NCBI GenBank assembly: GCA_002269645.1
Contig: NIVC01000799.1
Coordinates: 154,720 to 218,719 of the forward strand
Origin: Macrostomum lignano
Lineage: Eukaryota
DNA: 64,000 nucleotides
Reading direction: 5' to 3'
Shown piece by piece: positions 1,187 to 36,066 of the stretch. The position numbers and the translations under genes are program-made. The stretch's first letter is position 1, and each line of letters starts with the position of its first letter. The notes below the pieces were generated by a model that was not told where the DNA came from, ran no database searches, and was given only the letters and a program-made list of their open reading frames with translations.

Positions 1187-1222
<36 letters not shown>

Positions 1223-3100: not shown

Positions 3101-3142
<42 letters not shown>

Positions 3143-3751: not shown

Positions 3752-3793
<42 letters not shown>

Positions 3794-4401: not shown

Positions 4402-4443
<42 letters not shown>

Positions 4444-5059: not shown

Positions 5060-5110
<51 letters not shown>

Positions 5111-10325: not shown

Positions 10326-10677
10326 TGGAGATCGCACCCAGGTCTTAAGACTCCGAAGCCGGTCAATCTCGATAAAAAACAACCAATTTTTGCTAGCAAG
10401 TTTACTGCAGTTTGACAGCAAATATGCATTGAATAGATAACTTATACCCATCCACTTAACAGCTTCACTTCTGACAATGACTTCTCAGCTTATATTTGCC
10501 ATTCAGACACTTAAGCATTCAACTGGTGTACATATTTGAGCCCAACATTGCCACATAAAGTTCACCCGCCAGCAGTCAAGTTCATGCAGCACAAGACATG
10601 GACAATCAATCAGTCAGCAACCATGTTCATACACAGAGCAATGCCCTCATTATCCAGCTCTTCTCTCTAACACAGTG

Positions 10678-13600
10678 TCACGTGGCCTTGGCCCTCTGCG
10701 CAGCTCTCCTGCCCACCTGGGCCTGAAATCCAGACTTGATGCTGGCAACTGAGCACCGACTGCCGCAGGTGCTGCACTGCAGGAAGAACAGCCGAGTCTC
10801 CTTAACGAGCTCAGTGTCGTGAGACCGGCACGTGTGGCACATCACGTACTCCTTGATGTACGAGCGCAGCACTGATTCAATGTTCTTAGTCTGGAATCTG
10901 CCCTTAATAATGAGCTGGTTGTTCCCATCAACCGACCCGGTGGTGCCCAGCTCAGTTAGAAGGTAAGCCAACAGGTGGTCTGGCTTCCTTCGAATCTGCT
11001 TGCTGATCTCCGTGAAGTTGGCAAAGGCGGTCTTCTTGGTTCCAACTCGCATCAGAGACGGAGGCTTCATCACCACCTTCTTCTTCTCCGACAGCATATC
11101 CGGGTTCCGCTCCATCATGGCGCGGAAGGCCCGGCTGAGCAGCTCGCTGTAGCTGTAATCCTTGTCCTCGCTTCCATCTCCCTCCACAGCTGACGCCGCG
11201 CCTTGGCCTCCGTCTTCCTCAGGCTGCTCAGCCGCCGCCGCGAGTCGCTCCTTCGGCGGCTTCTTCTTCTTCTTTGTTTCGAGGTTAAAGTCTGCTTCAA
11301 GCTCCTCATCCACTGCTGGGGTCTCCTCGGCCAGCTCCTTCTTCCTATTCTTCTTCTTTTTTATGCTCGGGTCGAACATCTGCGCGAGTCAAACAGGGGA
11401 GCGAAAGGCATGGCAAACAATCATAAATCATAATTATTAGTCGCTTAAAAGTGACACGGGCAATGCTTTTGAGTATTACAGTGCTAACTAAGACCACTCA
11501 GCTACATTCTAATTACCTAATTGACAAAATTTGATAAGAATACAACTTCACATTTTTGTATCCATAAAAGCTTGGGTATAGTATTTAAAATATATACTTG
11601 TACCAACAATGTGTTTTCACAGAGTATTTTTCTGAAACTTTATAACATATTTTGAGATACAAAGGTAGTGTTCCGCTATAAGGAGGGTCCATGTGCCATA
11701 GCCATAAACAAAAATATGGCTTATTCCAATTCTCTGTATTCCATAGCCATGGGGACCCCAAGATTCCCATATTCCCATAGAGCCATAGCTGTAGTTTTAA
11801 CAAAAAATCTAGGAAACCAAATATTTTGAACCTGGAAGATAACCTGGTGCTTAAACAACTGCAAATTAAGATAGAAAATAAAACAAACACTTGATTGCCT
11901 TTGTAGGGTTATATTTAATATTTTTACAAAGAGTAACAATACTTAATCACTACTGAAAGTACTACTGCTAACTTTTTCACATTAATAAAAGTCAGAGTTT
12001 GCTAATGTTTTATTGTACTTTATTAGGTATAATTTATAAGTTTTTAAGTCTATAATACAGTATTAATAAGTTTTAATCCATTAGTAAGCATTAAGATATT
12101 CCATTATCATTAATGGACTGCCATTAAGATTTTGTTGCACTAACAAATTAAAGAATTTGCAATAGTCAATAAGACCAAAGATCCAAAGAAAGAGCAAGAA
12201 TATATTTGACAAGAAGTTATATTATAATTAAATCTACCTATATGCCTAAATAATTTTTTTGTTTATGAGGATGACCATGCAATATTAACAAATCTTTTTA
12301 ATTATTGCTTTCATTATTAAAATATAAAGTAATTCTTGCCTATACCTACATATAAGCATTTATACTTGATTTATTTCTATACTATATATAATGTATATTA
12401 GCAATCTTTTATAACTTTCTACTGTGCCTGACAGTGCAACTGAAACAACCTTCTTTTTTATATTTTAATAATTAATTAGCTTTCAATTTTCAAATTTCTT
12501 GGAAGAAGAAACTTCTTACGTTTTCTACTTTTAGTATTCTTTTATATATAAGCTTGCTTCTTTTTATTTGTTACTCAATAAATTGTAAATCACTTAGATA
12601 AACTAGCATTTATATTTAGGCTACTATGCTTCAAACAATTTCAGTTAGGCCCTAATGGTAAGGTAATATTACCATATTACCAATCAGAGTGTTGCTAAGC
12701 ATAACATGCGCAACTGCTGGCCGACCTGGCCGATTTTGCCACCATAAATTGTGGTGGACCAGGGGTAAGTTGCAATAATGCCAAGCTTAAAAATAGACAT
12801 AGTACTAATTAGATGACGAGGCATTTAGCCTTATAAGACAGTCATAGTTACTCCTGCCGTTTACCCATAATTGCATTTACAGGTAAGTTGCATTTTTGGT
12901 CAAAAAAGTAAGTCGCATGGCCAGTGTAAATCAGGGGGGTTGCGCATGTATGTTGCTAAGCAATATTGAATCAATGTATCTTAAAAAGATTTTTCATTTT
13001 ATTTAATAAAAATAAATCAAAGCTCATTTGATATCAAACAATTGCACAAATATTTGCTAAAAATAGTTGAAGCAAGTCAACTTTTGTTAAAAGTTACAGA
13101 CAATTGTTTTGAATGTTTATCAAAATATTTATTGGAAATTAGAAAACCCTCAAAGACAAAAAATATTTTATAAAAAAAAGATATTTTGTTTCAAATTTTT
13201 TATACTAATTTTTAAATTTTATACTAAAAATTAGTATTGCTGTATGCAATACTAATTTTGCATACAGCAACTTTATTTTTGACCTCTGGGTTATTTTTTA
13301 TATTGGAATAATATCAAAAAACAATAATTTTCATTAGGCCTACTAAGTAGGCCCCTAGGCCCTAGGCTATATCTACTTGCCATGATCTAGATGGGTTGCC
13401 ATTATAAACTCGAAAAATCACATTGTCAAAAACAAGGCTCTATCACAAGCTTGAAAAGTCACAAGCTTAAAAAAATCACATTGTCAAAAAGTTTAGCAAA
13501 CATCATCACAAGCTCAAAAAGGCACAAGCTCTAACCCTAACCCAAAGGCACTAACCCTAACTCTAAGGCACTAGTACCCTGCCTAACCCTGAACTATTAC

Positions 13601-14628
13601 CTTAACCCTAATCCCAACCCTAACCTAAACCTAAACCCTAACTTAAAGGCACTAGTTCTTACCTTGACCCTAACCCTAAACCCTAACCTTAGGGCACAAG
13701 TTCTAACCCCAACCTTAAACTTAACCCTAAGCCCTAACCCTAAGGCATAAGCTCTAACCCTAACCCTATTCAAGCTTGTGATGGTAGTTACTAACCTTTT
13801 CGACGATGTGACTTTTCGAGCTTGTGAATTTTTGAGCTTATGATTTTTTGAGCTTATAACTTTTTGAGCTTGTTATGATGGTTGCTAAAACTTTTTGACA
13901 ATGTGATTTTTCAAACTTATGACTTTTTGAGCTTGTGATAGTGACTGCTAAATCAGTTTTTGACAATGTGATTTTTTGAGCTTATGACTTTTCAAGCTTG
14001 TGATAGTGGTTGCTAAACTTTTTGACAATATGATTTTTTGAGCTTAAAGTCGAGCTTGTGGGTTGCTAAATCAGTTTTTGACGATGTTATTTTTCGAGCT
14101 TATGAGTTTTTGAGCTTGTGATAGTATTGGCTCTAATTTTTTTGATGATATGATTTTTCAAGCTTATGACTTTTCAAGCTTGTGATAGTGGATGCTTTTT
14201 GACAATATGATTTCTTGAGCTTGTGATGGGCCTTCCATCCCATCTAGACTATGGTCCTTAATAAATATGTGTATCACAAAGTGCATGCTATATTAATATA
14301 CCAAAATTCAGGCATATATGTTAGCTATCAATATCATAAATATAGGCCTAGCTAGGGCAAGGTAGAAATTACAAATAAGATGTTAGAAATAGGCCTATCT
14401 AGCATACATGGTATAATTAGACCTAGGCCTAGGCTGCCTAGCCTATGGCTATAATTTTCTAAATGTGGAATAGGCCTAGATAGGCCTATTGCCATTGCCA
14501 AACATCAAATAACTAGAAATTATTTAACATAATTTCTTTTTACCCTATTTATCTTAAGCTCAACGCTCAAGCAAGCTAGGCTTGGTTTAAAAAATAACAA
14601 TGCTTACAGGCTCGGCAGGCTCATCCAT
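10678..14628 (-). CDS. EIF2S2: Translation initiation factor eIF2 beta subunit, copy A (about 240 aa)
   Basis: The main exon 11379-10678 encodes [10 protein letters not shown].., two Lys boxes, [22 protein letters not shown].. and the C2C2 zinc ribbon (CHTC..CSTC), all diagnostic of eIF2-beta. Its ATG directly follows the acceptor cgcag. An upstream phase-0 micro-exon at 14628-14608 (MDEPAEP|gtaagc) has its acceptor at 14677, and a probable non-coding exon donor CAG|gtaagc lies at 14825. Confidence 0.9.
12702..12950. mobile_element. Non-autonomous TIR element (MITE) carrying a 28S rRNA fragment
   Basis: Termini TAACATGCGCAAC...GTTGCGCATGTA, flanked by the direct repeat TGTTGCTAAGCA (12690-12701 and 12951-12962, a 10-12 bp TSD). 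It lies in the intron of eIF2-beta A. Confidence 0.7.
12804..12866 (-). pseudogene. 63-nt degenerate fragment of LSU (28S) rRNA, helix 69-71 region
   Basis: The minus strand reads gggtaaacggcaggagtaactatgactgtcttataaggctaaatgcctcgtcatctaattagt. The conserved eukaryotic 28S sequence, recalled from memory, is GGGTAAACGGCGGGAGTAACTATGACTCTCTTAAGGTAGCCAAATGCCTCGTCATCTAATTAGT. Confidence 0.85.
13386..14248. mobile_element. Foldback-type non-autonomous element with a telomere-like core
   Basis: Ends tctagatggg...cccatctaga. Subterminal repeat arrays are inverted (cacaagctcaaaaa on the left, tttttgagcttgtg on the right), with degenerate CCCTAA at about 13530-13770. Confidence 0.6.
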
Positions 14629-15599
14629 AATGTCTTGAATTGTTGTCAATGTTGAATTATGATGGCAGTGCTGTGTCTAAAATCTCGCAGTTTGGTTCAA
14701 ATATGGTTATGGTAGGCTTCAAAGTCTATATAAGCCTATTATTATAATCTTATATCAAACAGACGTAAGACATAGTCAGTTACTCGATGTATGTCACCAT
14801 ATGTGATCGCCGATCGGGTGCTTACCTGACTAAAGTTGTCGATAAGAGTCACCGTGGACAAATTCGACGACAATCTAGTCAAAATTAACGAAAAAAGGGA
14901 AAAATTATTTTTATTATTATTAATTTTTCCGGTACAATGGTATTAGTCAATGTACATTACAGTTTACTTTTTTATTAAGTTTGTTTTCTCCATTGTTTGT
15001 CCTCAAAAATTTTAAAATGAGCTTTCGAAGAAACGTTTGAAAAAAAACCGTAAAAAACCGTAAAAAATTCTAGACGCTCTTTCAAATACCTTACTTATAC
15101 AAATATCGTAACTCGTTTTCAGCGATCGTGTAAAAATATTTAACTTTGTGAACAAATACTAAATACATCGTATAATATTGGCAAAACAGGCTCCTTGCCT
15201 GGGCCAAATTTACTACTACTTCTAGTTTCGCTTCTCTTCGTTCAAAAATACCTGTGCGCTACGCGTATATCTGGATATCATTATTTTTCTAATCGCAAAC
15301 ACTTAATGCCGATCTAAAACTTTGTTTTAAGCGCTCTATTTTTGGTTATTTACTTCTTCTCCATAAAAATATCCCTCATCTTTAATACCTTATAATTGCC
15401 TGCAATCCTTACATTTGATATTTTTTTAATTGTCTGAATAATACCTATATACTAATTTTTGTCACCTACGGGATCAATTGAATTGCTATACATCGAGTTC
15501 ATACAATACTTGCTTTTTAATTCCTTACTTAAATACTTTTTGCTTCATTAGTCGTTAAAGATTGTTTGAAGTTTCGTAGAGAAAAAATTGGTAATGGGC

Positions 15600-15887
15600 A
15601 TGGCTAGAGTTTCGGCACCGGAGCCTGTTTTCTAACAGCTAGGGATCCAGCAGTGCTGTATAGAAGCATATAAAGACTGCTAAGAACATATCTTAAGAAG
15701 TCTGAATATTAGAAGCATCTTGTCCCAAATCTTATCATATTGTCTTTGTCTTAAATTTTAATCTAGAACAAAATCTCAATATCAGCCACCTGTAGAAAGA
15801 AGAATATAATGTTCCATCTATATTATAATGGCTCTGCCGGATCTGTAGCCATTGGAAAATGGGTTCCGGTGCCGGAACTCTAGCCAT
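15600..15887. mobile_element. MITE-like element with ~54-bp imperfect TIRs
   Basis: atggctagagtttcggcaccggagcc...gatccagcag (from 15600) versus the reverse complement at 15834-15887. No TSD identified. Confidence 0.55.
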
Positions 15888-16779: not shown

Positions 16780-17390
16780 AAATAATTTACAAAAGTTTAG
16801 ATGTGAGAACACAATAAAAGAGAGAAAGAAAGAGAAAAAAGAAAGATAGAATATATAGTAAAGAAAAAAGAATAGTAAATAAGCATAGGCATAAGGTAAT
16901 TGCAAGAAAAGAGAAAATAAGAGAGAAAAAAGATAATAGAGACAAAAGTAAAGAGAAAAGATGAAAAACGAGAGCAAAGAGGAAAAGAAAAAGAAAAGAA
17001 AAAAGGATAGATAGAAAAAAGACAATAAATAGGGATGAGAAAGGGGGGGGGGGAAAGAGTAGAGAAAATAGTGAGAGGAGAAAGGAGAGGAAAAAATGAT
17101 AAGAGAAATAAAAGTAGAGATGAGAGCAGAGAGGTAAGGGAAAAGAGAAAAGAAAGAACAAGTAGAGGAGAGACAATAGATAAGAGGAGAAAGAAAGTAG
17201 AGAGAGAAGTAAAAGGAAAAGGAAGATAGATAACAATAGAGATGGGAGAACAGTGAGAGAGATAAGAGTAGAAAGGAGAGAGAAAAGTAGAAATGAGAGC
17301 ACCAAGAGGAGCGATAAAAGCAGAGAGGGGAGATAAGATCAGAGAGGAGAGATAAGAGCAGAGAAGAGAATAGATAGGAAAAAGTCAGTC
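16780..17390. repeat. GA-rich low-complexity tract
   Basis: Almost pure purine sequence. The ORFs called here are compositional artefacts. Confidence 0.85.
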
Positions 17391-17731
17391 TGGACAATGG
17401 CAATCTGTGGTGTCTCAACAGACTAACACAGGAAACACGAGTACGTGGCAGGTAAGACTTTTTGCTGGAAAAAAAGGTACGAGCTCCACTTAGGGCAACC
17501 TGCGCTTATATTTGATATTTAACAGTAAATTGTTACATGATCGATAAATTCAACCGCCAAAATGTCACGTGATTAAAAATACGTTTCACAATACAATATA
17601 CGAATAATTTATTAACTGCACTACTTAAAGTAGAGTAGTAAGAAAAAGTAAGAAAAGGTTAGTTAGACGAACGGCCCTTTTACGGGCTCCTAGTCACGAC
17701 ACAACATTTTCCCCCTCCGAGAGCACGGACA

Positions 17732-19663
17732 TCACAGTCCCGCTTGGTACCGCTCCGAAGGTCGTCGGGCCCTGGCCGAGCGCCTTGGTTGGACTTCGCT
17801 GGGAAGCCCCGCCGGCTGCGCCATTGCCGCCGCATCGCTGTCACCGCCGAGTTCGCCATGCACCAGCGGGTCGAGCTCGGCGTCCTGGTCGCCGTAGGCC
17901 CTAGCGCTTGTGGGGACCAACGCCTGTTGATTCCAGGTTGTGCCGTCGCTCAGCCAGTACGCGGCGCCGGCCTTGGTCATGATCTGTAGCGGGCCGGACA
18001 GTCTCGTGGCCAGCTTGCCCTTCTTGATGGGCCGCCGCACTCGGACCCAATCGCCTGGTCGGAGGTCGCTGACTCGCGCCCGGCGGCATAGGTCCGTGTA
18101 GCGCTTGGTCCGCTGTTGCCGGTAGTAGATGGTCTCGCGCAGTCGCCGTCCCTCGTCCGTCTCATTGATGTCTTTGGGCGGTGCCAGGGCAGTCAGCATC
18201 GTCCGCATCGATCGCCCTAGCATGAGCTCGGCGGGGCTCCTGCCCGTCAGGCTGTGCGGCGTGCTCCTGTAGACCTCCAGGAACTGGGTGATGGCGTCGG
18301 ACAGCGGCGTGCAGTCTGCCTTGGCCGCTCGAATGCTGGAAAGCAGCGTCCGGTTGAGCCGCTCAGTCTGGCCGTTCGTGCTCGGGTGGTAGAGGCTGGT
18401 CTTGCGGTGTTGGATACCCCGAGCTCGCAGGAACTCTGTGAAGGCCGCGCCGAACTGCGGGCCGTTGTCGCTGATGACCTTCTTGCAGAGACCCCAGCGA
18501 GCGAACAGGGACCGCATCACCTTGCAGACGGTTTCGGTTGTGATGCTAGCCGTGGCGAAGACCACCGGCCACTTGCTATGCAGGTCCGTAACCACCAGCA
18601 GGAACCGGGACGATTGCGGCGCTTCGTGCAGTTCACCGACGATGTCGACGGCGATCTCCTCCCACGGACCCGCGGGCCACTCGATCGGCTGCAGCGGCGC
18701 TGGGTGCAGCTTGAAGTTCTTCTCCGCCGTCTCACACGCGCCGCAGCCCCTGATGAAGGTTTCGACATCAGCGTCGAGTCGCGGCCACCAGACGGACTCT
18801 CGCAGGATCTGTTTTGTGCGCACCACGCCTGGGTGTCCGGTGTGCGCCTGTTCCAAGACGCCGCGCCTCAGCTCCGCCGGAATGACGGCTCGCTCCTGAA
18901 ACGCCAGGCAGGAAGCGTCGTGCCAGACGCTTAGGTGTTGTCGCGCCAGCAGGTACGGCTTGAGTTCGGAGTCCGCGGTGCGCCTGGGCCAGTCGCCGTT
19001 CAACACGTGTTGCCGCACCCGTCGCAGCGTCTCGTCCTTGGTCGTCGCCTCCGCCAGCTCGGACAGTGACAACGCGGGCACCCTGGGCATCGCGGTGTCG
19101 GGCAGCTGGACGAAGTTCATGTCGGAGCCGTTGCTCCACCGGGACAGGAGGTCGGCCATGCAGTTGCTCTCGCCGGGTAGATAGCGGACGTGGAAGTCAT
19201 ACTGTTGGTACCTGTCGCACCACCTGTGGATGCGGAGCGGCCGGTGCCCGGTGCCGCTAGGTCCCATCAGCAGCTGCCGCAGAGACTGATGATCCGTTCT
19301 GAGCTCAAAGTGCCTCCCGTACAGGAAGAAATGCCACTTTTCCATGGCCCAGAGACACGCCAGGGCTTCTCGTTCGTTGGCTGCGTAGCGCCGCTCGGTC
19401 TCTGTGAGCGCTCGGGCGGCGAAGGCGATCGGCCGCTCGACGCCGTCCTGCAGCTGGGACAGCTGGGCGCCCAGGGCGACTGAGCTGGCGTCCGTAGTGA
19501 CAATCGTAACGGCTGCGGGGTCGAACAAAGCCAAAACTGGCGGGCTGCTGACCGCCTGCTTCAGCGCGTCGAAAGACTGCTGGCACTCTTCGGACCAGCT
19601 GAACTCCGCGTCGGCCTTAAGCAGCTTGCGCAGCGGCTCCGTGATGTCCGAGAAGTGCGGGAT
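17732..19663 (-). pseudogene. pol C-terminal part: RT connection, RNase H and integrase
   Basis: The frame is open from PHFSDITEPLRKLL.. onward. It contains RNase H (TTDAS, NEREAL, TDH), integrase HHCC (HTGHPG..CGAC) and DDE (IAVD, ISDNG, NGQTER). Confidence 0.9.
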
Positions 19664-19986
19664 GGGGGAAAATGTTGTGTCGTGACTAGGAGCCCGTAAA
19701 AGGGCCGTTCGTCTAACTAACCTTTTCTTACTTTTTCTTACTACTCTACTTTAAGTAGTGCAGTTAATAAATTATTCGTATATTGTATTGTAATGTATCG
19801 TATTCACGTGACATTTTGGCGGTTGAATTTATCGATCGTGTAACAATTTACTGTTAAATATCAAATATAAGCGCGGGTTGCCCTAAGTGGAGCTCGTACC
19901 TTTTTTCCGGCAAAAAGTCTTACCTGCCACGTACTCGTTTCCTGTGTTAGTCTGTTGAGACACCACATTGGCGACGAGGATAGGAT
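19664..19986 (+). mobile_element. Inverted insert of the same family: PPT remnant + full LTR (19673-19967) + 18-nt PBS (tRNA-Ser GCU type)
   Basis: gggggaaaa-TGTTGTG...CACCACA-t-TGGCGACGAGGATAGGAT interrupts the codons F-I-P-H of pol, with GGAT on both sides. Confidence 0.9.
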
Positions 19987-21350
19987 GAAACGCCTGAGGA
20001 AGTTGGCGGCGCCCAGGAACGGCTGCAGCTCCTTCTGGGAGGTCGGAGCCCGGATCTCTTCGAAAGCACGCGTACGCGAATCGCCAACACGGAACCCGTC
20101 GCCGGAAACTAGGAAGCCGAAGAATTCGATCTGCGGCTGTCGGAACTCACATTTCTGCTTGTTCACTGTCAAGCCCCTGTCACAGAGTCGCCGCAGTAGA
20201 GCCTCCAAACAGCGGTCGTGCTCCGTCGTGGTGGCACCGAAGATGATGAAATCGTCGAGGATGTGCTCCACGCCGTCCAGGTCGGCCACCAGATCGTCGA
20301 GCATGCGCTGGAACGCCGCAGGCGCTGACGTCAAACCGAACGGCACTCGGCAGTACCTGTATAGGCCCTTGTGCGTGATGAAGGCTGTCAGGTCGCGCGA
20401 AGACTCATGCAGCTCCATCTGCATGTAGCCGGCCTTCAGGTCCACCTTGCTGAAGATCTGTCCTTTGGCCCCCTTGATCTTGGCAGCGATGTCGTCCAGC
20501 TGGGGCATCGGGTGTTGGTCGCATATCACCGCCTTGTTGGGCTCCCGGATATCGACGCAGACCCTGATGCTGCCGTCCTTTTTGGTGGTGGTCACCAGGT
20601 TTGACACCCAGCGACTCGAGTCGACTCGCTCGATGATGCCAGCCGCCTCCAGTTTGTCGAGCTCAGCCTCCACCAGCTGCTGCTTGGCCAGCGGTAGACG
20701 ACGCAGAGGCTGGCGCACTGGCGGCATGGAGGGGTCGATGACGGGCTTGTGCACGGCTCCGCTGCAGCAGCCGATCTGCTCGCTAAAGGCCGCTGGGAAC
20801 CGCGCCTCCAGCTGCTCCGCGACGCTGTTCACCTCGCTGACGTCCTCACAGGCTCACATGGAAACCGAGCTTATCCATGAGGTCTCGACCTGCGATGTTG
20901 TCGCCGTGCTTCGCGATGTAGAATAGGTGTTGCAGAGACCGGTTGTTGTGCTTAACGGGAACCGCCGCTTGGCCCACGAGATCGATCAGCTTGCCGCCGT
21001 ATGCGCGCAGCTTCATCGTTGTCGGCTGAGGTAGCACGTCGGTCAGGAGCGCGGCCGTGTCGGCGTTCAACAGTGACACCTTGGCGCCGCAGTCGATCAG
21101 AGTATTGACCGGCACCTCTGCTTGTCCGAGCCGCAGCTGCGCACGGATCTCACCGTCTCCCTGCACGGCGTATATAGTGACCGCCTCGTCCGGGCCGTCC
21201 TGAGCCTGGCCGGTCACTTGGAGCGCCTTGCTCCGGCAGCAACGGCTGAAATGGTTCATCTTGCCGCAGTTGTTGCAGGACTGCCCCTTCGCTGGGCAGT
21301 TGCCGTCGCCGTGACTGCGTCCGCAGCGAGAGCAGGCCTTGGCGGCGGGT
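19983..21350 (-). pseudogene. Truncated gag (zinc knuckles) + protease + reverse transcriptase, with a frameshift near 20845
   Basis: CSRCGRSH..CPAKGQSCNNCGKMNHFSRCC (Mag-type double knuckle), protease LIDCGA, and RT motifs SKVDLKAGYMQ, VPFGLTSAPAAFQR and ILDD. A TGA at about 20846 and a +1 shift separate PR from RT. Confidence 0.9.
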
Positions 21351-22160
21351 ACGTGTACTAACTGTGTACTGTGTACTAACACAGGAAACGAGTACGTGGC
21401 AGGTAAGACTTTTTGCTGGAAAAAAGGTACGAGCTCCACTTAGGGCAACCCGCGCTTATATTTAATATTTAACAGTAAATTGTTACACGATCGATAAATT
21501 CAACCGCCAAAATGTCACGTGAATACGATACATTACAATACAATATACGAATAATTTATTAACTGCACTACTTAAAGTAGAGTAGTAAGAAAAGGTTAGT
21601 TAGACGAACGGCCCTTTTACGGGCTCCTAGTCACGACACAACACAATCATTTTTTGCAAACAGGGAAAACAAGATATGTTATTTAGGAGGTTTTAAAGAA
21701 GATTTAGAAGATTGGATTAGGGTCATAGAATTCAGCTAATAGATTTTAAGGAATGTAATTTTGTCAATGGGAGTTCTATGGCCTTTCTCCAATAGAGGAG
21801 TTGGCGTTTTTTAAAAATAAATAAATATTTATTGGATTATCTAAGATCCATTTTCTTGACAATGCCATTTTTGTAAATAAATATTTGTATGCAATAGGGT
21901 CTAGGGCAACTTTGTAGTTGTACCATGTGCATTGGTATACAAAAATTTACTTCTATATGCAATAGTTAAACTCTGGTATGCAGTCTGCAGGCCAAAATAT
22001 TTGTATGCATAGTCTATATTTTGGAGGCTATTGTGTAGGACTATATTTATATTAGTATATTGATAAATCAATGATGTGTATTTGTCTAGTCTCCCAATTT
22101 TTGCCTACTATAATCCTAATATAGCTTTAAATATCATTTAGCCCTTTTTGCATCCATTGC

Positions 22161-23294
22161 ATGGACTGCGTTGCTGTTCGACTTAAGCCTGGGGAGCTGC
22201 TGCGCGAGTCCCTGATGCAACTGGTGAAAGAGCAGGGCCTGAGCTCTGCTTTTGTTATCAGCTGTGTTGGTAGCCTCACCCAAGCTAGACTGCGCTATGC
22301 CACCTCATCTGATGGTTCTGGCACCAACCCAGTAAGTATTCTGATTTTTCTAAAAAAACTGAAGCACTTGTGATATTATATTTGTCTGAGCAATAAATAA
22401 AAATGAATTGTTGTCTAGATTTTATCTTTGTGTCATAGAATGTGATATAGGAGATCAACTTTAATTTTGACGCGCTGAATTTTGAACCTTAGATGCCATA
22501 TTGGCATCATTTTCCCATCTATATGCCATTTAAATGAAGCTCCATATTTGTCACATTTCATTTACTGCATAAAGAGATAAATAACCTAGCTAATGGTCAC
22601 AAGTCGGGGGAGAGATAAAGAAGAAGAGGGAATAGATAAGAGAAGAGCGGAGAGAGGAGATGAGATATGGGATGAGAGAAGAGAAGAGAGAGAAGATAAG
22701 AAAAAGATAAGGATAAGAGACGGCAGAAGAGAAGACGAAAGCAAAGGAGAGAAGAGGGGCGAGAGGAGAGGAGAAAGAAGAAGATAGAAGAGAGGAGAGA
22801 GGCGAGATCAGATACGAGAGCTAAGAGGAGACCCTGAGCGGGCATGCAGATTGCTATTATGAAGTTTCGCGGGTCGGAGGTTGTCGACCTTTGGTTTAAA
22901 GTATCACTGATTTTATAATTATTGGGATTATTGAAATTTCATTAGTGCTCTTTCAAATTTCTAATTTTCAACTAACGCCAGTTGGCATCCGTTCTATTAT
23001 ATCCGATGGGATAATCTTTTATTGCAGTCCGAACTGCTGCAACGCCACATGGAAATTGTTTCACTAGTTGGCACCATCAGCCAGGGCGGCCAATCGTGCC
23101 ATCTGCATATTTGCCTGTCGGACGAGCACGGCCGTGCGATTGGTGGCCACCTCCTTGGCGACGATATTGTGTACACAACTGCCGAGGTTGTCCTTGGCTG
23201 TCACGCTGGTCTGGTCTTTACCAGGGAGCCGGACCCGGCGACGGCTTTTGACGAATTAGTTGTGACTGCGGCGCCGGCTTTGAAGCCTAAATGA
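22161..23294 (+). CDS. PPC/DUF296-domain protein (AF0104/ALDC/Ptd012-like fold), about 145 aa, 2 exons
   Basis: Exon 1 is 22161-22331 (RLKPGELL..SCVGSLTQARLR, phase-0 donor gtaagt). Exon 2 is 23028-23294 (EIVSLVGTI..HLHICLSD..G..GGHL). Both carry typical DUF296 motifs. Confidence 0.85.
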
Positions 23295-23614: not shown

Positions 23615-23945
23615 GTGGGTTGTAGCCTAGTGGTCAGAGCGTCGGACTCACGACTTGAAGGTCGGGGGTTCGATTCCCGATCCTACTGAAACAATTTGTA
23701 TCCTTGAGCAAGAAATTAAACTCTGCATTGCTTCAGTTCACCCAGCTGTAAAATGGGTGCCAGCATTAGCTGGGGTAATTGAGGGTGTGTGGCGACCCCC
23801 CCCCCCAGTCCTTGGACTGAACAGCCGTACGCAGCCTTCAGATGCGCCGGGCAATAGCTGCGGCTGAGCTGTCGGTTGCACACATCTGCTCATTAAGGCC
23901 CATTAAGACAGGTGTAATCAATTATTATTATTATTATTATTATTA
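23615..23945 (+). mobile_element. tRNA-derived SINE with a Nin/Deu-like core and (ATT)n tail
   Basis: A box TAGCCTAGTGG (23623), B box GGTTCGATTCC (23667), core ccttgagcaag..cttcagttcacccagctgtaaaatggg, and an ATT tail. A second copy lies at 37490-37770. Confidence 0.75.
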
Positions 23946-25256: not shown

Positions 25257-28200
25257 ATGGACATGGAGGAATCATCTGAACCAGTAAGTGTATACTAGCA
25301 GCCTACCAATTCATTTATTGAGGTATAAGCAGTGGTGTTGGAGCCAGTAGTGGATCCAGAAAATTTTGAATTGGGGGCACAGACTACTAAGCCAGGTACA
25401 TATATATGCATATCATGTACAAGTATTATATACATGATAATGTGTATTTTACATATAAAAAACTCGATGGGGTAGGCGCACCTTGTGCACCCCCTCTAAA
25501 TCTGCTATTGGTTAGAGCATATTTCAAATTGGGAGGGGCCATTGTTGTATTGATGTGAGGGCACATTGCATGGCTCTGGCTGAAGTCATCATATTTGAGA
25601 TTGTCATATTTGGTTACAAGAAAAACAACTAAATTATATAAATCATGATTGTCTTAGCATTAGGCAATACTGCATTCACTAAATCATTATATTATATTTC
25701 ATTGGCTGCGCAAGGATATGGGCTCTCATAGCAGCAATATGTTCTTATTTGCCAACAAAATGATTTTCAACTGTAAATTACATTCATACCATTCACTTAA
25801 AAGATAGGCCTATAAAAGCCTTGTACTAATTCCTATATTAAAGTTAATACTAATAGTCTAACTGAATATTTAAGTTTTAATTAAGAATGATAGAAAGATT
25901 GCCTTGAAATGGTTTGATAGGCTAGGGCCTAACTCTATAATTAGAAGCAGATGTATTTTTTAAACTTGAGTCAAGTTATATTATTTTTTAGCTATTATAA
26001 AAATTTGCTTCAACTTATTCTAGGGTCCTATATTTTTTGTTTCATTTGGTTTCATTTTCAAGAAACTTAATGAATTCATGATATTCAAATGTTAACATCT
26101 TATGGATTGCCCCAACCAAGTTTTCATCTTTATATGATAATTTAGAATATAACAATTTTGACCATATCCCATTGTACATGTCAATGTGCTCAAGCAAGTT
26201 AATGTGCCTTTAGATTAGCCTAAAAATGTATATCTTTAATTTACAAAATGGCATTCTTTCATTTTATGATCACTTAGCACTGTCCCTATGGGAGTCGGGA
26301 CTTTCGTTATACAATCCCCCCACAGAGGACAGAAAATTGCTCTTAAAATCAAACTTCAAAATGGGACCACTTCTGTGTCATTTTAATATAAAATATTGTG
26401 TCTTATAGAAGTTAGAAGCCTATCCTTATATTTACTTTTGTTATGCGATCATTTAAATGGTGAATTTATATGCAGATAATTGCAAGACGAAACCAAAAGA
26501 GCTTGTAGATTTCGACTTACAATCACACCAATAGTAAAATTGTATTGGAAAGATTGTATGACAAAATGGTAGGAAATTGTCACTATAATAGACGTTTCAA
26601 CCAAACAATCAATTGCAGCCTCTAATATGTCTACAAACTGAAAGCCCCCTGGCTCTTTTTACATGGCTCTTTTTGTATGCCTTTTTGGGCACCGCCGCCG
26701 CCCTATGCCCCCCTTCATTTTCGTCATACGTTCACCCCTCAATATAACACATAGGTCTAATGAACTGGGGGGATTTTATGACAAAAGTGAGGGGGTGGCG
26801 CTTGTGAATCTTATAATGAATACAATTTTATTCTTGAACCCTGTAGATCAATGATGGAGATCAATGTAGCAGTTCGTATCTTAAGTTGTCGTGAACTAGT
26901 GCAACTTCACCAGGGATGTAATGTGTAATCCATTTACTTTCGTCATACAATCCCTTTAATATAATTCTATCAATGCGGTGATCATAATTCAAAACCTACA
27001 AGCTCTTTCAGTTTTGTCTTGTGAATATAATATAAGTTAAGATAATATAAGAACATATAAGTTCACCATTTAAATGATCATATGACGAAAGTGAATATAA
27101 GCTATGTGCTTTCATAACTAATGCTATGCCCACGATCCTCAAGTTGATTGAAAAGTGAGTTGCAGTGATGAATTAGGTTGACTGGAAAGTGAGTTGCAAT
27201 GATTTTGTTCTTGGAAAATAAATGTGAAACATACTTTTTGATAAACTAAAGTGTCTTTTTTGACTCTTTTTAATGGGGATCGTAAGACAAAACTTGACCT
27301 TATCAGGGATTGTAAAACAAAAGAATGCCTACAAAATTAATGATTTTTCAATTACAAAAGCCAATCCTATATACTAAAAATGGTCTGTCTGTGTCTATCT
27401 ATCTATCTATCTATCTATCTATGTGATCGATTAGAGAAAAAATGGCTGGACCGATTTTGTTCGAACTTGCACTGTTCGATCAGAAATTTTCCCGTGACGG
27501 TACATGCATCGTGGCTAAGAAATTGCTCAATGCTAAAGGCATTAAATATTCGAAAAACATGCTTTTTTGCAAAGGTCAAGCAAACTTTTTGACTTGAAAT
27601 GCATTGTAAGAATGCTAGAGAAAAAACTGACTGGTTGAATTCTGACTCTGAAATAGATTGCATCATAACTGAATTGTAACTCCGACTTGAATTGAAAATG
27701 CAGTGTGGAAGCGTAGCACCAGACTTGATTTAAATTGCGTAACCATATTGTTAACTGATACTGACTGACTGAGAAATTGATTATGTCATAACTGCTTCGT
27801 GTGATTTACTCTATGCTTGGATTTTAAAATGTTGAATTATATAAGTGCAAAATTTGATGTTATCAAAACGATGAGAGCTAGCGTAGAGGTGAACAAACTG
27901 AACTGCTAAATGCAGCGACGATGGTTCGAATTTTCATAGAGTATAATTTTTTTAATTAAAGCTTTTCAACGTCAGGAAAACTAAAAGACTTTTTTAAAAG
28001 AAGCGTCATGTAATGAATCATAGAAGCGTCATGTAAACAATCATAGAAGCGTCATGTAAACAATCATAAAAGCGTCATTTAAAAAATCATAGAAGCGTCA
28101 TGTAAAAAATCATAGAAGCGTCATGTAAAAAATCATAGAAGCGTCACGTAAAAAATCATAGAAGCGTCATGTAAAAATCGTAGAAGCGTTATATAAAAAT

Positions 28201-31200
28201 CATAGAAGCGTCATGTACACAATCATAGAAGCGTCAAGTAAACAATCATAGAAGCGTCATGTAAACAATCATAGAAGCGTCATGTAAAAAATCATAGAAG
28301 CGTCATGTAAACAATCATAGAAGCGTCATGTATACAATCATAGAAGCGTCATGTAAAAAATCATAGAAGCGTCATGTAAAAAATCATAGAAGCGTCATAT
28401 AAACAATCATAGAAGCGTCATATAAACAATCATAGAAGCGTCATATTAAAATCATAGAAGCGTCATATAAACAATCATAGAAGCGTCATGTAAAAAATCA
28501 TAGAAGCGTCATGTAAACAATCATAGAAGCGTCATGTAAACAATCATAGAAGTGTCATATAAACAATCATAGAAGCGTCATGTAAACAATCATAGAAGCG
28601 TCATGTAAACAATCATAGAAGCGTCATTTAAAACTCATAGAAGCGTCATGTGAACAATCATAGAAGCGTCATGTATACAATCATAGAAGCGTCATGTAAA
28701 AAATCATAGAAGCGTCATGTAAACAATCATAGAAGCGTCATGTATACAATCATAGAAGCGTCATGTAAAAAATCATAGAAGCGTCATATAAACAATCATA
28801 GAAGCGTCATATAAACAATCATAGAAGCGTCATATAAACAATCATAGAAGCGTCATATTAAAATCATAGAAGCGTCATATAAACAATCATAGAAGCGTCA
28901 TGTGAAAAATCATAGAAGCGTCATGTAAACAATCATAGAAGCGTCATGTAAACAATCATAGAAGTGTCATATAAACAATCATAGAAGCGTCATGTAAACA
29001 ATCATAGAAGCGTCATGTAAACAATCATAGAAGCGTCATTTAAAACTCATAGAAGCGTCATGTGAACAATCATAGAAGCGTCATGTAAAAAATCATAGAA
29101 GCGTCATGTAAAAAATCGTAGAAGCGTCATGTAGAAAATCATAGAAGCGTCATGTAAAAAATCATAGAAGCGTCATGTAAAAATCATAAAAGCGTCATGT
29201 AAAAATCGTAGAAGCGTCATATAAAAATCATAGAAGCGTCATATAAAAATCAAAAAAACGTCATTAAAAATTAATGAAAGCGTCATTTAAAAATTTAAGA
29301 AGCATCATGGTAGAATTAAAGAAACGTCATGTCAGACATGAAGGGTGTCATGGAAAAATTAAATGCAGCTATAATGCTGTGCTGGGGAGAAAAACTGAGA
29401 CGTCAAGGCTCTCAGAAAATAACTGAGATTACGGGGGGGGGGTTTCTGAGATGTCAAAGCAAAAGTCAGAAGCTAATTCAAAGTTCATGTACTTTACTCA
29501 ATTTTTTTATTGCATTCTTTGTTGGCTCGCCACGGGGGGGGCGCTGATAGAAGAAGAGTCATGTAAAAAATCATAGAAGCGTCATTTAAAAATCAAAAAA
29601 ACGTCATTTAAAAAATCATAGAAGCGTCATGTAAACAATCATAGAAGCGTCATATAAAAATCATAGAAGCGTCATGTAATGAATCATAGAAGCGTCATGT
29701 AAACAATCATAGAAGCGTCATGTAAACAATCATAGAAGCGTCATGTAAAAAATCATAGAAGCGTCATGTAAACAATCATAGAAGCGTCATGTAAAAATCA
29801 TAGAAGCGTCATGTAAACAATCATAGAAGCGTCATGTAATGAATCATAGAAGCGTCATGTAATGAATCATAGAAGCGTCATGTAAACAATCATAGAAGCG
29901 TCATGTAATGAATCATAGAAGCGTCATGTAAAAAATCATAGAAGCGTCATGTAATGAATCATAGAAGCGTCATGTAAACAATCATAGAAGCGTCATGTAA
30001 TGAATCATAGAAGCGTCATGTAAACAATCATAGAAGCGTCATGTAAACAATCAGAGAAGCGTCATGTAAAAAATCGTAGAAGCGTCATGTAAACAATCAT
30101 AGAAGCGTCATGTAAAAATCATAGAAGCGTCATGTAAACAATCATAGAAGCGTCATGTAAACAATCATGGAAGCGTCATGTAAACAATCATAGAAGCGTC
30201 GTGAAAAAATCATAGAAGCGTCATTTAAAAACTAATGAAAGTGTCATTTAAAAAATTAAGAAGCATCATGGTAGAATAAAAGAAGCGTCATGTCAGACAT
30301 GAAGGGTGTCATGGAAAAATTAAATGCAGCTATAATGCTGTGCTGGGGAGAAAAACTGAGACGTCAAGGCTCACAGAAAATAACTGAGATTACGGGGGGG
30401 GGGGTTTCTGAGATGTCAAAGCAAAAGTCAGAAGCTACTTCAAAGTACATGTACTTTACTCAATTTTTTTATTGCATTCTTTGTTGGCTCGCCACGGGGG
30501 GGGGCGCTGATAGAAGAAGAGTTATGTAAAAAATAAAAGTAGCACTATGCATACATAAAAGAAAAGTCATGTCAAAGTTAAAAGATTCATTTGGGAATTG
30601 CTACGATGTCAAAGCTAGGTGGAAATCGTTATAGTGCTGTGATTCTTAAAGAAGGAATCACTAAAATGTCAAGGCTTAGGGGAGAAGAATTGCTGAGATT
30701 TCAAGGCTTTAGGTTGGGTTAAAGTTAGGTTTAGGTCAGGTGTGGGTTGAGGGTTATATTTTATCGGGTTTCAAGGTTAACGGGGGATTTTTCAGATTTC
30801 AAGGTTTATGGGGGGCATCGCTGACATGTCAAGGCTTACGGGGGGATAGCTGAGAGATGTCAAGGCTCACGGGGGTATAAATGAGATTTCAAGGATAAAG
30901 TCAGAAGCTACATGTAGTTTATTGAAAACTTTTTATTACATTATTTGATGCCTCCTCAGGGGAGGGATCGCTGATAAAAAAGCGTAATGTAAAAAATAAA
31001 AGAAGCTTCATGTCGAAGTTAAGAGATTCATTTGGGAATCCATTGCATTGCTGAGATGTCAAGGGGGGAGTTGATATGTTAAAGCTTGTGGGGGGGGATT
31101 ACTGACATGTCAAGGCTTACAAGGTTTGACAGGAGATTTTTTAAGATTTCAAGGATACATGTAGCTTATTAAAGAAACGTGTATTGCATTTCTTTGGCTC

Positions 31201-33143
31201 CCCAACGGGGGGCGTAGATTGCTAGTTTTTACTAAAAATTACTTTTAATTTTGATATTAAAAATTATTGTCTCTAGTATTTGGTTTAATGATAAATACTA
31301 AATAACAGCAACATATTCAATGAAAATATTGATACATTTTAAAACAATAGACAATCAATTACTAATTAGTAAAACTGATGAATAGACAGTCCTATATATA
31401 TATATATATATATATAAGCTGCAGTAATGAAGGCATAGTAGGCATATCTATCTTCTTTGACTAACCACTCACTAAGTCTACCCATTTGTCTAATAGTCTA
31501 ACTTTGTACCAAAGACATATTTTAAGCCATGTCATTTTATGCTTATTTACAAAAATAATTTTGAAGTTTGCATTTTTAGATATAGGCAAAATGACATTGG
31601 TATCAAAAAGCATCATAGATACATCTTGAACTGGCATTTAAATTAGCTAATAAGTGAACCAATTATTGAATCAATATTTACTATATTTATACTGCTTCTT
31701 GCTAGAATGTTGCATGCTTGTTTTTGGGCCATAGACAAAATTCATAGAAAAAGCTATAGATAGAAGCCATAGACTCTAAGTATTTTTACTCTTCAAATTT
31801 ACACATAGCATGAACAAATCCAATCTAGTTTAGTTCATCTTCTAGAATATTATGATATTATTTTTAGCTTACCCTTCAACCATTTATTTGGTTCTATTGC
31901 TAGTTGCAATATAGTCATATTGCAAAGCTATTGTTAAGTGCTCACATTACAAATAGTATGTCTTACATTAGAAAGATAGCAAAAACACATGCATTTTGAG
32001 CCTCACTGCTAGTTGTCTATAGTAAAGAGTATGTCAAATCCGCAGGCAATTAATTCCTTGGAGAAATCATTTAAGCACTATCTTGCTTGGCCTTTTCATT
32101 TATTTCATGCATGCCTCCAACCAAACCAACCAGGAAGCTCCATATGAAAAAGTTACAATATAGAACAAGGTTCAGCAAGAAAAAGTTCACTTAACAAAAC
32201 CTGCATATAAAGAAGCACATGACAAAAATTTTTTTGTATGTTTAGACTTCAGTAAGTTACATAATCACCTCCCCAGCGATACAGCCTGTGCGAATTCTTG
32301 CCTGTGTGCTAAGTTGGCAATGCTTCTATTGTTATCGCCTCTGTCAATAGTGTCGATTATCAATCTATGCTTTTCGTCGCTAATCTTCGTTCGTTGCTCT
32401 TTGTTTGCAATGCCTTTCACTCCCCTGTTTGACTCGCGCAGATGTTCGACCCGAGCATAAAAAAGAAGAAGAATAAGAAGAAGGAGCTGGCCGAGGAGAC
32501 CCCAGCAGTGGATGAGGAGCTTGAAGCAGACTTTAACCTCGAAACAAAGAAGAAGAAGAAGCCGCCGAAGGAGCGACCCGCGGCGGCGGCTGAGCAGCCT
32601 GAGGAGGACGGAGGCCAAGGCGCGGCGTCAGCTGTGGAGGGAGATGGAAGCGAGGACAAGGATTACAGCTACAGCGAGCTGCTCAGCCGGGCCTTCCGCG
32701 CCATGATGGAGCGGAACCCGGATATGCTGTCGGAGAAGAAGAAGGTGGTGATGAAGCCTCCGTCTCTGATGCGAGTTGGAACCAAGAAGACCGCCTTTGC
32801 CAACTTCACGGAGATCAGCAAGCAGATTCGAAGGAAGCCGGACCACCTGTTGGCTTACCTTCTAACTGAGCTGGGCACCACCGGGTCGGTTGATGGGAAC
32901 AACCAGCTCATTATTAAGGGCAGATTCCAGACTAAGAACATTGAATCGGTGCTGCGCTCGTACATCAAGGAGTACGTGATGTGCCACACGTGCCGGTCTC
33001 ACGACACTGAGCTCGTTAAGGAGACTCGGCTGTTCTTCCTGCAGTGCAGCACCTGCGGCAGTCGGTGCTCAGTTGCCAGCATCAAGTCTGGATTTCAGGC
33101 CCAGGTGGGCAGGAGAGCTGCGCAGAGGGCCAAGGCCACGTGA
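25257..33143 (+). CDS. EIF2S2: Translation initiation factor eIF2 beta subunit, copy B (about 242 aa)
   Basis: The main exon 32442-33143 is about 99% identical to copy A and follows the acceptor cgcag. A phase-0 micro-exon at 25257-25283 (MDMEESSEP|gtaagt) has its acceptor near 25233, with a candidate non-coding exon donor at 24794. Confidence 0.88.
25345..25510. mobile_element. Degenerate hAT-like MITE
   Basis: cagtagtggatccag...ctaaatctgctattg with an imperfect 8-bp TSD gttggagc/gttagagc. Confidence 0.45.
26420..27105. mobile_element. Degenerate foldback/MITE with long imperfect inverted arms
   Basis: About 150 bp starting gatcatttaaatggtgaa..aagagcttgtag..gattgtatgac recurs in reverse complement at about 26930-27105. 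Confidence 0.55.
28010..30530. repeat. 23-bp satellite in two blocks, each ending in the same ~300-bp tail
   Basis: atcatagaagcgtcatgtaaa(c/a)a units. The tail is duplicated at about 29240-29560 and 30205-30530 (near-identical spurious ORFs at 29329 and 30290). It lies within the eIF2-beta B intron. Confidence 0.9.
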
Positions 33144-33489
33144 CACTGTTAGGGAGAAGAGCTGGATAATGAGGGCATTGCTCTGTGTATGAAGATGGTT
33201 GCTGACTGATTGATTGTCCATGTCTTGTGCTGCATGAACTTGACTGCTGGCGGGTGAACTTTATGTGGCAATGTTGGGCTCAAATATGTACACCAGTTGA
33301 ATGCTTAAGTGTCTGAATGGCAAATATAAGCTGAGAATTCATTGTCAGAAGTGAAGCTGTTAAGTGGATGGGTATAAGTTATCTATTCAGTGCATATTTG
33401 CTGTCAAACTGCAGTAAACTTGCTAGCAAAAATTGGTTGTTGCCTTTATCTAAATTGACCGGCTTCGGAGTCTTAAGACCTGGGTGCGA

Positions 33490-36066
33490 TCTCCAGCTGT
33501 GAGATTTGTGGCTTTTATGTTTAACTGTGAGATTTGTGGCTTCGATCCTCAGCTGTGAGATTTGTGGCTTTTATGTTTAACTGTGAGATTTGTGGCTTCG
33601 ATCCTCAGCTGTGAGATTTGTGGCTTTTATGTTTAACTGTGAGATTTGTGGCTTCGATCCTCAGCTGTGAGATTTGTGGCTTCGATCCTCAGCTGTGAGA
33701 TTTGTGACTTTCATCTCCAGCTGTGAGATTTGTGGCTTTTATGTTTAACTGTGAGATTTGTGGCTTCGATCCTCAACTGTGAGATTTGTGGCTTCGATCC
33801 TCAGCTGTGAGATTTGTGACTTTCATCTCCAGCTGTGAGATTTGTGGCTTTTATGTTTAACTGTGAGATTTGTGGCTTCGATCCTCAGCTGTGAGATTTG
33901 TGGCTTTTATGTTTAACTGTGAGATTTGTGGCTTCGATCCTCAGCTGTGAGATTTGTGGCTTCGATCCTCAGCTGTGAGATTTGTGACTTTCATCTCCAG
34001 CTGTGAGATTTGTGGCTTTTATGTTTAACTGTGAGATTTGTGGCTTCGATCCTCAGCTGTGAGATTTGTGGCTTCGATCCTCAGCTGTGAGATTTGTGAC
34101 TTTCATCTCCAGCTGTGAGATTTGTGGCTTCGATCCTCAGCTGTGAGATTGTGGCTTCGATCCTCAGCTGTGAGATTTGTGGCTTCGATCCTCAGCTGTG
34201 AGATTGTGGCTTCGATCCTCAGCTGTGAGATTTGTGGCTTTTATGTTTAACTGTGAGATTTGTGGCTTCGATCCTCAGCTGTGAGATTTGTGGCTTTTAT
34301 GTTTAACTGTGAGATTTGTGGCTTCGATCCTCAGCTGTGAGATTGTGGCTTCGATCCTCAGCTGTGAGATTTGTGACTTCGATCCTCAGCTGTGAGATTT
34401 GTGGCTTCGATCCTCAGCTGTGAGATTGTGGCTTCGATCCTCAGCTGTGAGATTTGTGGCTTCGATCCTCAGCTGTGAGATTGTGGCTTCGATCCTCAGC
34501 TGTGAGATTTGTGGCTTTTATGTTTAACTGTGAGATTTGTGACTTCGATCCTCAGCTGTGAGATTTGTGGCTTCGATCCTCAGCTGTGAGATTTGTGGCT
34601 TCGATCCTCAGCTGTGAGATTTGTGGCTTCGATCCTCAGCTGTGAGATTTGTGGCTTTTATGTTTAACTGTGAGATTTGTGACTTCGATCCTCAGCTGTG
34701 AGATTGTGGCTTCGATCCTCAGCTGTGAGATTTGTGGCTTCGATCCTCAGCTGTGAGATTGTGGCTTCGATCCTCAGCTGTGAGATTTGTGGCTTCGATC
34801 CTCAGCTGTGAGATTTGTGGCTTTTATGTTTAACTGTAAGATTTGTGGCTTCGATCCTCAGCTGTGAGATTTGTGGCTTTTATGTTTAACTGTGAGATTT
34901 GTGGCTTCGATCCTCAGCTGTGAGATTGTGGCTTCGATCCTCAGCTGTGAGATTTGTGGCTTCGATCCTCAGCTGTGAGATTTGTGGCTTCGATCCTCAG
35001 CTGTGAGATTGTGGCTTCGATCCTCAGCTGTGAGATTTGTGGCTTCGATCCTCACCTGTGAGATTTGTGGCTTCGATCCTCAGCTGTGAGATTTGTGGCT
35101 TTTATGTTTAACTGTGAGATTTGTGGCTTCGATCCTCAGCTGTGAGATTTGTGACTTCGATCCTCAGCTGTGAGATTTGTGGCTTCGATCCTCAGCTGTG
35201 AGATTGTGGCTTCGATCCTCAGCTGTGAGATTTGTGGCTTTTATGTTTAACTGTGAGATTTGTGACTTCGATCCTCAGCTGTGAGATTGTGGCTTCGATC
35301 CTCAGCTGTGAGATTTGTGGCTTCGATCCTCAGCTGTGAGATTGTGGCTTCGATCCTCAGCTGTGAGATTTGTGGCTTCGATCCTCAGCTGTGAGATTTG
35401 TGGCTTTTATGTTTAACTGTGAGATTTGTGGCTTCGATCCTCAGCTGTGAGATTTGTGGCTTTTATGTTTAACTGTGAGATTTGTGGCTTCGATCCTCAG
35501 CTGTGAGATTGTGGCTTCGATCCTCAGCTGTGAGATTTGTGGCTTCGATCCTCAGCTGTGAGATTGTGGCTTCGATCCTCAGCTGTGAGATTTGTGGCTT
35601 CGATCCTCAGCTGTGAGATTTGTGGCTTCGATCCTCAGCTGTGAGATTTGTGGCTTTTATGTTTAACTGTGAGATTTGTGGCTTCGATCCTCAGCTGTGA
35701 GATTTGTGACTTCGATCCTCAGCTGTGAGATTTGTGGCTTCGATCCTCAGCTGTGAGATTTGTGGCTTCGATCCTCAGCTGTGAGATTTGTGGCTTCGAT
35801 CCTCAGCTGTGAGATTTGTGGCTTCGATCCTCAGCTGTGAGATTTGTGGCTTTTATGTTTAACTGTGAGATTTGTGGCTTCGATCCTCAGCTGTGAGATT
35901 TGTGGCTTTTATGTTTAACTGTGAGATTTGTGGCTTCGATCCTCAGCTGTGAGATTTGTGGCTTCGATCCTCAGCTGTGAGATTTGTGGCTTTCATCTCC
36001 AGCTGTGAGATTTGTGGCTTCGATCCTCAGCTGTGAGATTTGTGGCTTTTATGTTCAACTGTGAGG
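33490..36066. repeat. 28-bp minisatellite downstream of eIF2-beta copy B
   Basis: tttgtggcttcgatcctcagctgtgaga plus the variants tttgtggcttttatgtttaactgtgaga and tttgtgactttcatctccagctgtgaga. Diverged relatives occur at 36710-36900. Confidence 0.95.

Follow-up and report, generated by a model that had tools for sequence, protein, structure and literature searches.

The 64,000-nucleotide stretch of the flatworm Macrostomum lignano analysed here (contig NIVC01000799.1 of assembly GCA_002269645.1, positions 154,720 to 218,719; "the window", to which all positions refer unless another segment is named) carries two genes for eIF2-beta, the beta subunit of the factor which delivers the initiator tRNA to the ribosome. 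The two genes form a divergent, head-to-head pair, with copy A on the minus strand and copy B on the plus strand. The comparison of their sequences indicates that the pair very probably stems from an old inverted duplication of the whole gene, whose main exon has been homogenised by gene conversion from arm to arm, with at least one exchange after the paralogous genome copies of this species diverged.

The two arms of the inverted repeat (10378-11420 and 32401-33441) are 99% complementary, a similarity far above chance, and lie 20,980 bp apart. An earlier note on this DNA had described two back-to-back inverted copies about 21 kb from each other, with an identity that begins abruptly some 41 bp ahead of the main-exon acceptor (11420/32401), runs through a 702-bp exon with an R/K change, an L/P change and a few silent ones, and extends over about 340 bp of 3' flank. 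All of this is confirmed. The onset of identity is at 11420/32401, 41 bp ahead of each acceptor: the base-by-base alignment is at 95–100% within the arms, and the 60 bp just inward are at chance level. The main exons are identical at 697 of 702 nucleotides, and the five differences comprise two non-synonymous changes at second codon positions (R/K and L/P) and three silent changes at third positions. The homologous 3' flank measures 337 bp and holds nine difference events, two 2-bp indels among them. The unique portion of each arm amounts to 1,080 bp with 18 difference events. On the contrary, the positions at which the earlier note ended the arms (10330 and 33490) are not ends but the start of a 28-bp minisatellite, into which both arms continue distally; this portion is 82–94% identical. 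The sequence comparison of the window revealed no homology distal to the minisatellite arrays. The origin of the arm as a processed retrocopy was considered and rejected: the homology spans 41 bp of intron and passes the poly(A)-signal region into the minisatellite, and there is no A-run.

In both genes the main exon is preceded by a micro coding exon and a phase-0 intron, located where the earlier note had placed them; the introns, estimated there at 3.2 and 7.2 kb, are 3,228 bp long in copy A and 7,158 bp in copy B. The 5' halves of the genes had been called unrelated, which is correct for the non-coding DNA: BLAST (word sizes 11 and 7, soft scoring) gives only noise and no collinear similarity between 11421-16500 and 23300-32400. 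It is not correct for the first coding exons, which are homologous. The A-type micro exon on contig NIVC01003981.1 reads ATG GAG ATG GAG GAG CCT GCC GAG CCT then gtaagc (MEMEEPAEP), and the B-type micro exon reads ATG GAC ATG GAG GAA TCA TCT GAA CCA then gtaagt (MDMEESSEP). They have 6 of 9 residues and 19 of 27 nucleotides in common, and GTAAG follows each. When all six reading frames of the 64 kb were scanned, the only stretches which match MEMEEPAEP at six or more of nine residues were the two micro exons, for a shuffled expectation of 0.01.

The junction between micro exon and main exon is also found in the transcript of a distant relative (L006), whose coding sequence (CDS) is 75.6% identical: ATG GAA GAG CCT is joined to ATG TTC GAT (MEEP to MFDPS), which shows that the junction is real and ancestral. 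The 5' and 3' untranslated regions (UTRs) of this transcript were also mapped on the window in search of the non-coding exons suggested in the earlier note, but they are too diverged to be placed.

The micro exons and the main exons have diverged to very different extents. Third positions differ in six of the seven micro-exon codons other than ATG versus 3 of the 234 main-exon codons (Fisher p = 2e-9). The micro exons are saturated and the main exons nearly identical, therefore the main exon and its 3' flank cannot share the history of the first exon. Similarly, the homology of micro exons embedded in unalignable DNA implies that the duplication of the whole gene is old and that the main exon was homogenised. 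The old duplication postulated in the earlier note is thus supported by the homologous micro exons, their saturated third positions, and the unalignable introns and upstream DNA. In contig NIVC01003981.1, the A-type micro exon (L001 ~9995-10021) has an in-frame ATG two codons ahead of the annotated start; this earlier ATG gives MEMEEPAEP and not the MEEPAEP of PAA49088.1. Copy A of NIVC01000799.1 is shorter (MDEPAEP).

About 85% of the genome is present in three paralogous copies in the assembly, Mlig_3_7, with a single-nucleotide polymorphism (SNP) rate of 2.2% overall and of 1.1% in CDS (PMC10733133). The divergent pair is indeed also found on contigs NIVC01000302.1 and NIVC01003981.1 (302 and 3981 below, NIVC01000799.1 being 799), with spacers of 20,226 and 29,497 bp respectively. 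The earlier note had worried about a haplotype mis-join, against which the same inverted architecture on three separate contigs speaks. In place of related species, the comparison used the three paralogues of the locus within this one assembly, and the six arms were aligned.

Left of 32401, every variable column of this alignment groups the sequences by type, three A against three B, and in all three genome copies the 41-bp intron stretch within the arm holds A/B-fixed differences at 32409 and 32419. The boundary of the tract and the split between A and B are therefore older than the separation of the three copies. The situation is different inside the arm. Position 32586 is G in both 799 arms and A in the four other arms. 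Both 799 arms carry CTGCAGTAAACTTGCTAGCAAAAATTGG and all four others CTGCAATAAACTTGCTGTTTAATTGG, which differ by a SNP at 33414 linked to a complex indel at 33425-30; such a linked change cannot plausibly have arisen twice. The variants which are specific to contig 799 and common to its two arms require at least one transfer from arm to arm after the genome copies had diverged, on top of the homogenisation that came before. In the 3' flank, nine events separate A799 from B799 (the arms A and B of contig 799), compared to 18–20 between A799 and the other A arms and 11 between B799 and the other B arms, so that each 799 arm has the other as its closest relative there. This sorting by type outside the arm, with 799-specific sharing within it, bears out the proposal that the main exon evolves in concert.

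Several sites give mutually incompatible partitions of the arms: a TG indel common to B799 and A3981, the positions 33159 and 33338, and, in 302 and 3981 only, a group of A-specific variants at 33290-33316. This points to short, patchy tracts. A799 has nine private changes, and six of its eight private substitutions are from G/C to A/T, as expected of fresh mutations which have not yet been erased.

The four arms of contigs 302 and 3981 have the canonical hexamer AATAAA as their likely poly(A) signal, for which both 799 arms have the variant AGTAAA, and the indel lies 7 nt downstream (this region is at L001 16076-16101, L002 10955-10980 and L003/L004 10949-10974 in the analysis segments). The AGTAAA variant together with the indel may change the formation of the 3' end of both genes in genome copy 799.

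Contig 302 is 3981-like left of ~12750, in the B arm and beyond ~39300, and it is 99.6–100% 799-like at 12750-27381 and 36050-39000. This block mosaic results either from exchange between paralogous genome copies or from haplotype switching by the assembler. The three contigs show no sign of a crossover that inverted the spacer: in each of them A adjoins the left flank and B the right flank.

Table. Features of the eIF2-beta pair and of the spacer, in order of position in the window
Feature	Positions	Strand	Remarks
Arm A, distal part: 28-bp minisatellite, ~43 units	9141..10340	.	Homologous to the arm B array; repeat search
Arm A, 3' flank, probably 3' UTR	10341..10677	-	AGTAAA poly(A)-signal-like hexamer at 10401-10406; alignment
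Copy A main exon, eIF2-beta, 233 codons + stop	10678..11379	-	Open reading frame; part of PAA76725.1 / Mlig022373g1
Copy A intron, last 41 bp, within arm	11380..11420	-	Two A/B-fixed differences; alignment
Copy A intron, rest, beyond arm	11421..14607	-	Whole intron 11380-14607; unalignable with copy B intron
Copy A micro coding exon, MDEPAEP	14608..14628	-	ATGGATGAGCCTGCCGAGCCT; GTAAGC donor, phase 0; in the published CDS span
Gypsy-type long terminal repeat (LTR) retrotransposon	17365..21643	-	Reverse transcriptase, RNase H and integrase reading frames; in contigs 799 and 302, absent from 3981
PCC-domain gene (PF03479)	22176..23294	+	Spacer, ~2 kb upstream of the copy B micro exon, same strand; three genome copies
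Copy B micro coding exon, MDMEESSEP	25257..25283	+	ATGGACATGGAGGAATCATCTGAACCA; GTAAGT donor, phase 0; homologous to A-type, identical in three genome copies
Copy B intron, outside arm	25284..32400	+	Whole intron 25284-32441; has the 3.85-kb segment 27381-31226 found only in contig 799, with a 23-bp minisatellite
Copy B intron, last 41 bp, within arm	32401..32441	+	Alignment
Copy B main exon, eIF2-beta, 233 codons + stop	32442..33143	+	Open reading frame; public model 5'-partial (232 aa)
Arm B, 3' flank, probably 3' UTR	33144..33480	+	AGTAAA at 33413-33418; complex variant 33425-33430, otherwise only in arm A of contig 799; alignment
Arm B, distal part: 28-bp minisatellite, ~93 units	33481..36069	.	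Repeat search

The predicted proteins identify both genes as the eIF2-beta of M. lignano. In a protein search, the 233-residue open reading frame (ORF) of copy B is matched best by eIF2-beta models of M. lignano (99% identity) and next by eIF2 subunit 2 proteins of metazoans. Residues 97-208 match the Pfam family PF01873 (eIF-5_eIF-2B) with E = 7e-40, over profile positions 6-117 of 117. Both ORFs have a zinc ribbon, CxxC...CxxC (CHTC...CSTC), near the C-terminus, which is intact in all six copies (two arms on each of three contigs), as is the whole CDS. The public protein PAA76725.1 (Mlig022373g1, 240 aa; NIVC01000799.1, GCA_002269645.1, Mlig_3_7) consists exactly of MDEPAEP followed by the ORF of copy A, R and L residues included, and the CDS span published for copy A, exactly 14628 -> 10678, takes in the micro exon. 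The contig with this model matches the window at 100% over 678-24628. The public model of copy B is equal to copy B over its 232 residues.

The protein, of 233–242 aa, has two lysine boxes, KKKKNKKK and KKKKKPPK, and the transcript of the related flatworm likewise encodes two. The canonical number of N-terminal lysine boxes in eIF2-beta is three, as in yeast and human. The first box reads KKKKNRKK in A799 (K->R at 11345) and KKKNKKK in A3981 (deletion of AAG in L001, at the equivalent of 32463-65), and KKKKNKKK elsewhere. The protein is ~100 residues shorter than human eIF2-beta.

The sequence of events is very probably as follows. An old inverted duplication copied the whole gene, with its promoter, its micro coding exon, its intron and the large exon which holds nearly all of the CDS. 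The inner halves have since diverged past alignment, leaving only the micro exon of 7–9 codons recognisable, kept by selection. The outer parts, which begin 41 bp ahead of the acceptor and reach into the minisatellite, have been repeatedly overwritten by non-reciprocal exchange between the inverted arms of the same chromosome. For this the arms presumably pair within one chromosome or between sister chromatids, and repair would proceed without crossing over. Conversion would be unable to spread inward past the point where homology runs out, and the tract would thus stop there on its inner side. By slowing divergence, purifying selection on the CDS may preserve a substrate for later conversion, and the breaks which initiate conversion may arise in the unstable 28-bp minisatellite at the outer end. 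The outcome would be two transcription units with unlike 5' regions and slightly different N-terminal peptides, which produce essentially one protein.

A number of observations weigh against this scenario. The signal of concerted evolution amounts to ~3–4 independent events. The mosaic structure of contig 302 means that the three loci are not fully independent, and two to three lineages are sampled. The public model of copy B is 5'-partial and does not include the first exon. The assembly was produced by Canu from PacBio reads and polished by Pilon with multi-mapping Illumina and RNA-seq reads (PMC5730564). Such polishing could erase, and occasionally create, single differences in an exon present in six copies; for this reason, no weight is placed on the very low diversity of the CDS among the six copies. 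Lastly, the sites at the edges of the arm (32409, 32419 and 33451) follow orthology, as does the A-specific cluster at 33290-33316 in two of the contigs.

These orthology-following sites would be expected after a single replacement with no ongoing exchange, either by a recent partial duplication with its breakpoint 41 bp within the intron, which landed beside an existing exon, or by one long conversion of the B main exon shortly before the triplication, in which case the identity would simply reflect recency. The proximal boundary, which is sharp and identical in the three contigs and so older than their split, would also fit, and the divergence of A and B in the non-coding part of the arm (~3%) is near the 2.2% found between genome copies. 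However, since the micro exons are homologous, a partial duplication which happened to insert next to an unrelated exon is excluded. The linked SNP and complex indel, present in both 799 arms and absent from the other four, need a later transfer, and the distances in the 3' flank group within the locus for contig 799. A single replacement is therefore improbable.

We give very little credence to the idea that the near-identity is an artefact, created by a haplotype mis-join or by short-read polishing of a multi-copy exon. The draft is that of a neopolyploid, 93% of the read pairs map to several loci, and contig 302 has a mosaic-like structure, all of which could be invoked in its favour. However, the inverted layout with distinct A and B 5' halves is present on three contigs which differ by kilobase indels. 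Polishing requires sequences that are already similar for reads to map, and it cannot raise an identity of 70% to 99%. It would moreover draw the six copies to one consensus, and not make a variant which is confined to both arms of contig 799.

Two other candidates were set aside. Homogenisation between genome copies was considered because the CDS is nearly invariant in all six copies, but it was dropped as unsupported: the published divergence of CDS between copies is just 1.1%, and polishing may contribute to the invariance. GC-biased conversion was considered on the basis of the GC content at third codon positions, which is 0.76 in the main exon; the values for the relative (0.68) and for the adjacent PCC exon (0.60) do not make this distinctive enough.

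A distinct matter, which concerns expression and not the cause of the identity, is whether the micro exon of copy B is used. Copy B might be silent, or a spliced leader might be trans-spliced onto the main-exon acceptor, translation starting from the ATG of the leader or from that of the exon; there would then be no two-promoter arrangement. The main exon opens with its own ATG right after the acceptor and is a self-sufficient ORF. The spliced leader of M. lignano itself terminates in ATG, and ~30% of the genes, conserved ones especially, are trans-spliced. Every B-type copy has only a 5'-partial model which starts in the main exon. However, the partial models may be explained by transcripts of the other copy mapped there. 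The [T/C]TNCAG motif, which is enriched at trans-splice sites and present at ~44% of those of M. lignano, is not found at the main-exon acceptor, GCGCAG, which matches it in CAG only. Moreover, the B micro exon has kept its ATG, its frame, its phase-0 GTAAGT donor and six of nine residues amid saturated neighbours, which implies long-term coding selection. The conservation of these features argues that the B micro exon serves, or for a long time served, as a coding exon, and it seems rather unlikely that it is bypassed.

The spliced-leader sequence is absent from the window. The eIF2-beta protein cluster contains no M. lignano transcript contigs, and no expression data for Mlig022373, Mlig014777 or EIF2S2 were found in the full text and supplements of the M. 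lignano papers that were searched. One may speculate that the pair is a maintained two-promoter device, in which two modules of regulatory DNA and first exon are selected for different expression (e.g., germline or neoblast versus soma) and yield slightly different N-termini, and one coding body is kept uniform over six copies by conversion, with the minisatellite as initiator. We regard this idea as doubtful.

Conversion between inverted paralogues with a tract bounded within an intron is a well-known process, of which the eIF2-beta pair is a clear, ordinary example. The palindromes of the primate Y (and X) chromosomes also have inverted arms around a unique spacer, with intrachromosomal non-reciprocal exchange and arm genes which evolve in concert. 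However, their arms range from 9 kb to 1.45 Mb and are at least 99.9% identical, compared to 1.08 kb plus a minisatellite and ~98–99% here. Unlike in the Y palindromes, the eIF2-beta arms hold just the 3' part of the gene, the 5' part being in the diverged spacer, and the locus has no known sex linkage or testis specificity (M. lignano is a hermaphrodite). Membership in the class of large Y-type palindromes (tens of kb to Mb, at least 99.9% identical throughout) was therefore rejected, given the 1,080 bp of unique arm with 18 events and the minisatellite at 82–94%.

The human RHD and RHCE genes are paralogues in opposite orientation ~30 kb apart, with a gene in the spacer, and exon-scale conversion in cis produces mosaics. 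The eIF2-beta locus is also an inverted pair with a gene in the spacer, which codes for a PCC-domain protein, but it is head-to-head and converts one exon with nearly all of the CDS, whereas RHD and RHCE are tail-to-tail, have many exons and form antigenic hybrids. Drosophila Hsp70Aa and Hsp70Ab form a head-to-head pair whose coding region evolves in concert by conversion as the flanks diverge. Unlike the eIF2-beta genes, in which the tract leaves out the promoter, the first exon and the intron, they are intronless and their promoters are partly homogenised. The human gamma-globin genes HBG1 and HBG2 have a sharp intronic conversion boundary and a simple repeat at its edge, which may act as initiator or terminator. 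The two globin copies have the same orientation, and at their boundary lies a (TG)n microsatellite within the intron, in contrast to the 28-bp minisatellite 3' of the eIF2-beta gene.

The interest of the M. lignano pair is that it offers a compact case of partial concerted evolution, in which a saturated first exon, a ~99% identical main exon and a boundary defined to the base are found in one pair. It also illustrates that, in tests of gene conversion, the triplicated genome of M. lignano offers paralogous copies which can be used as stand-ins for outgroup species. In practice, the two eIF2-beta genes (six copies) are indistinguishable by CDS probes, RNA interference and short reads; the first exons, the 5' UTRs and the introns alone discriminate between them. 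The 5'-partial public models of the B type could be completed. The understanding of gene conversion and of eIF2 is left unchanged.

An Rfam scan of the window gave no matches. The Gypsy-type element has LTR-like ends (17422-17706 and 21375-21643) which are ~92% identical, and an extra inverted LTR copy inside (19632-19967). The B intron segment found only in contig 799 (3.85 kb) contains ~100 units of the 23-bp minisatellite at 27999-30293. Contig 302 alone has a 2.67-kb insertion (L003 4302-6970) ~290 bp past the B micro exon. On the left of the pair, about seven tandem units of ~650 bp, 96–98% identical, extend over 1133-5785 and overlap a gene model of 154 aa at 3056-4999 (+). Interstitial telomere-like (CCCTAA)n is present at 7708-7925 and 13661-13765; one of these tracts is set in a 39-bp repeat, the other in the intron of copy A. 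Minisatellites with units of 18–42 bp in 10–100 copies are unusually dense, with more than 20 arrays in the window, including those at 40062-40926, 46469-47190, 48627-49330, 55437-56176 and 57530-58053.

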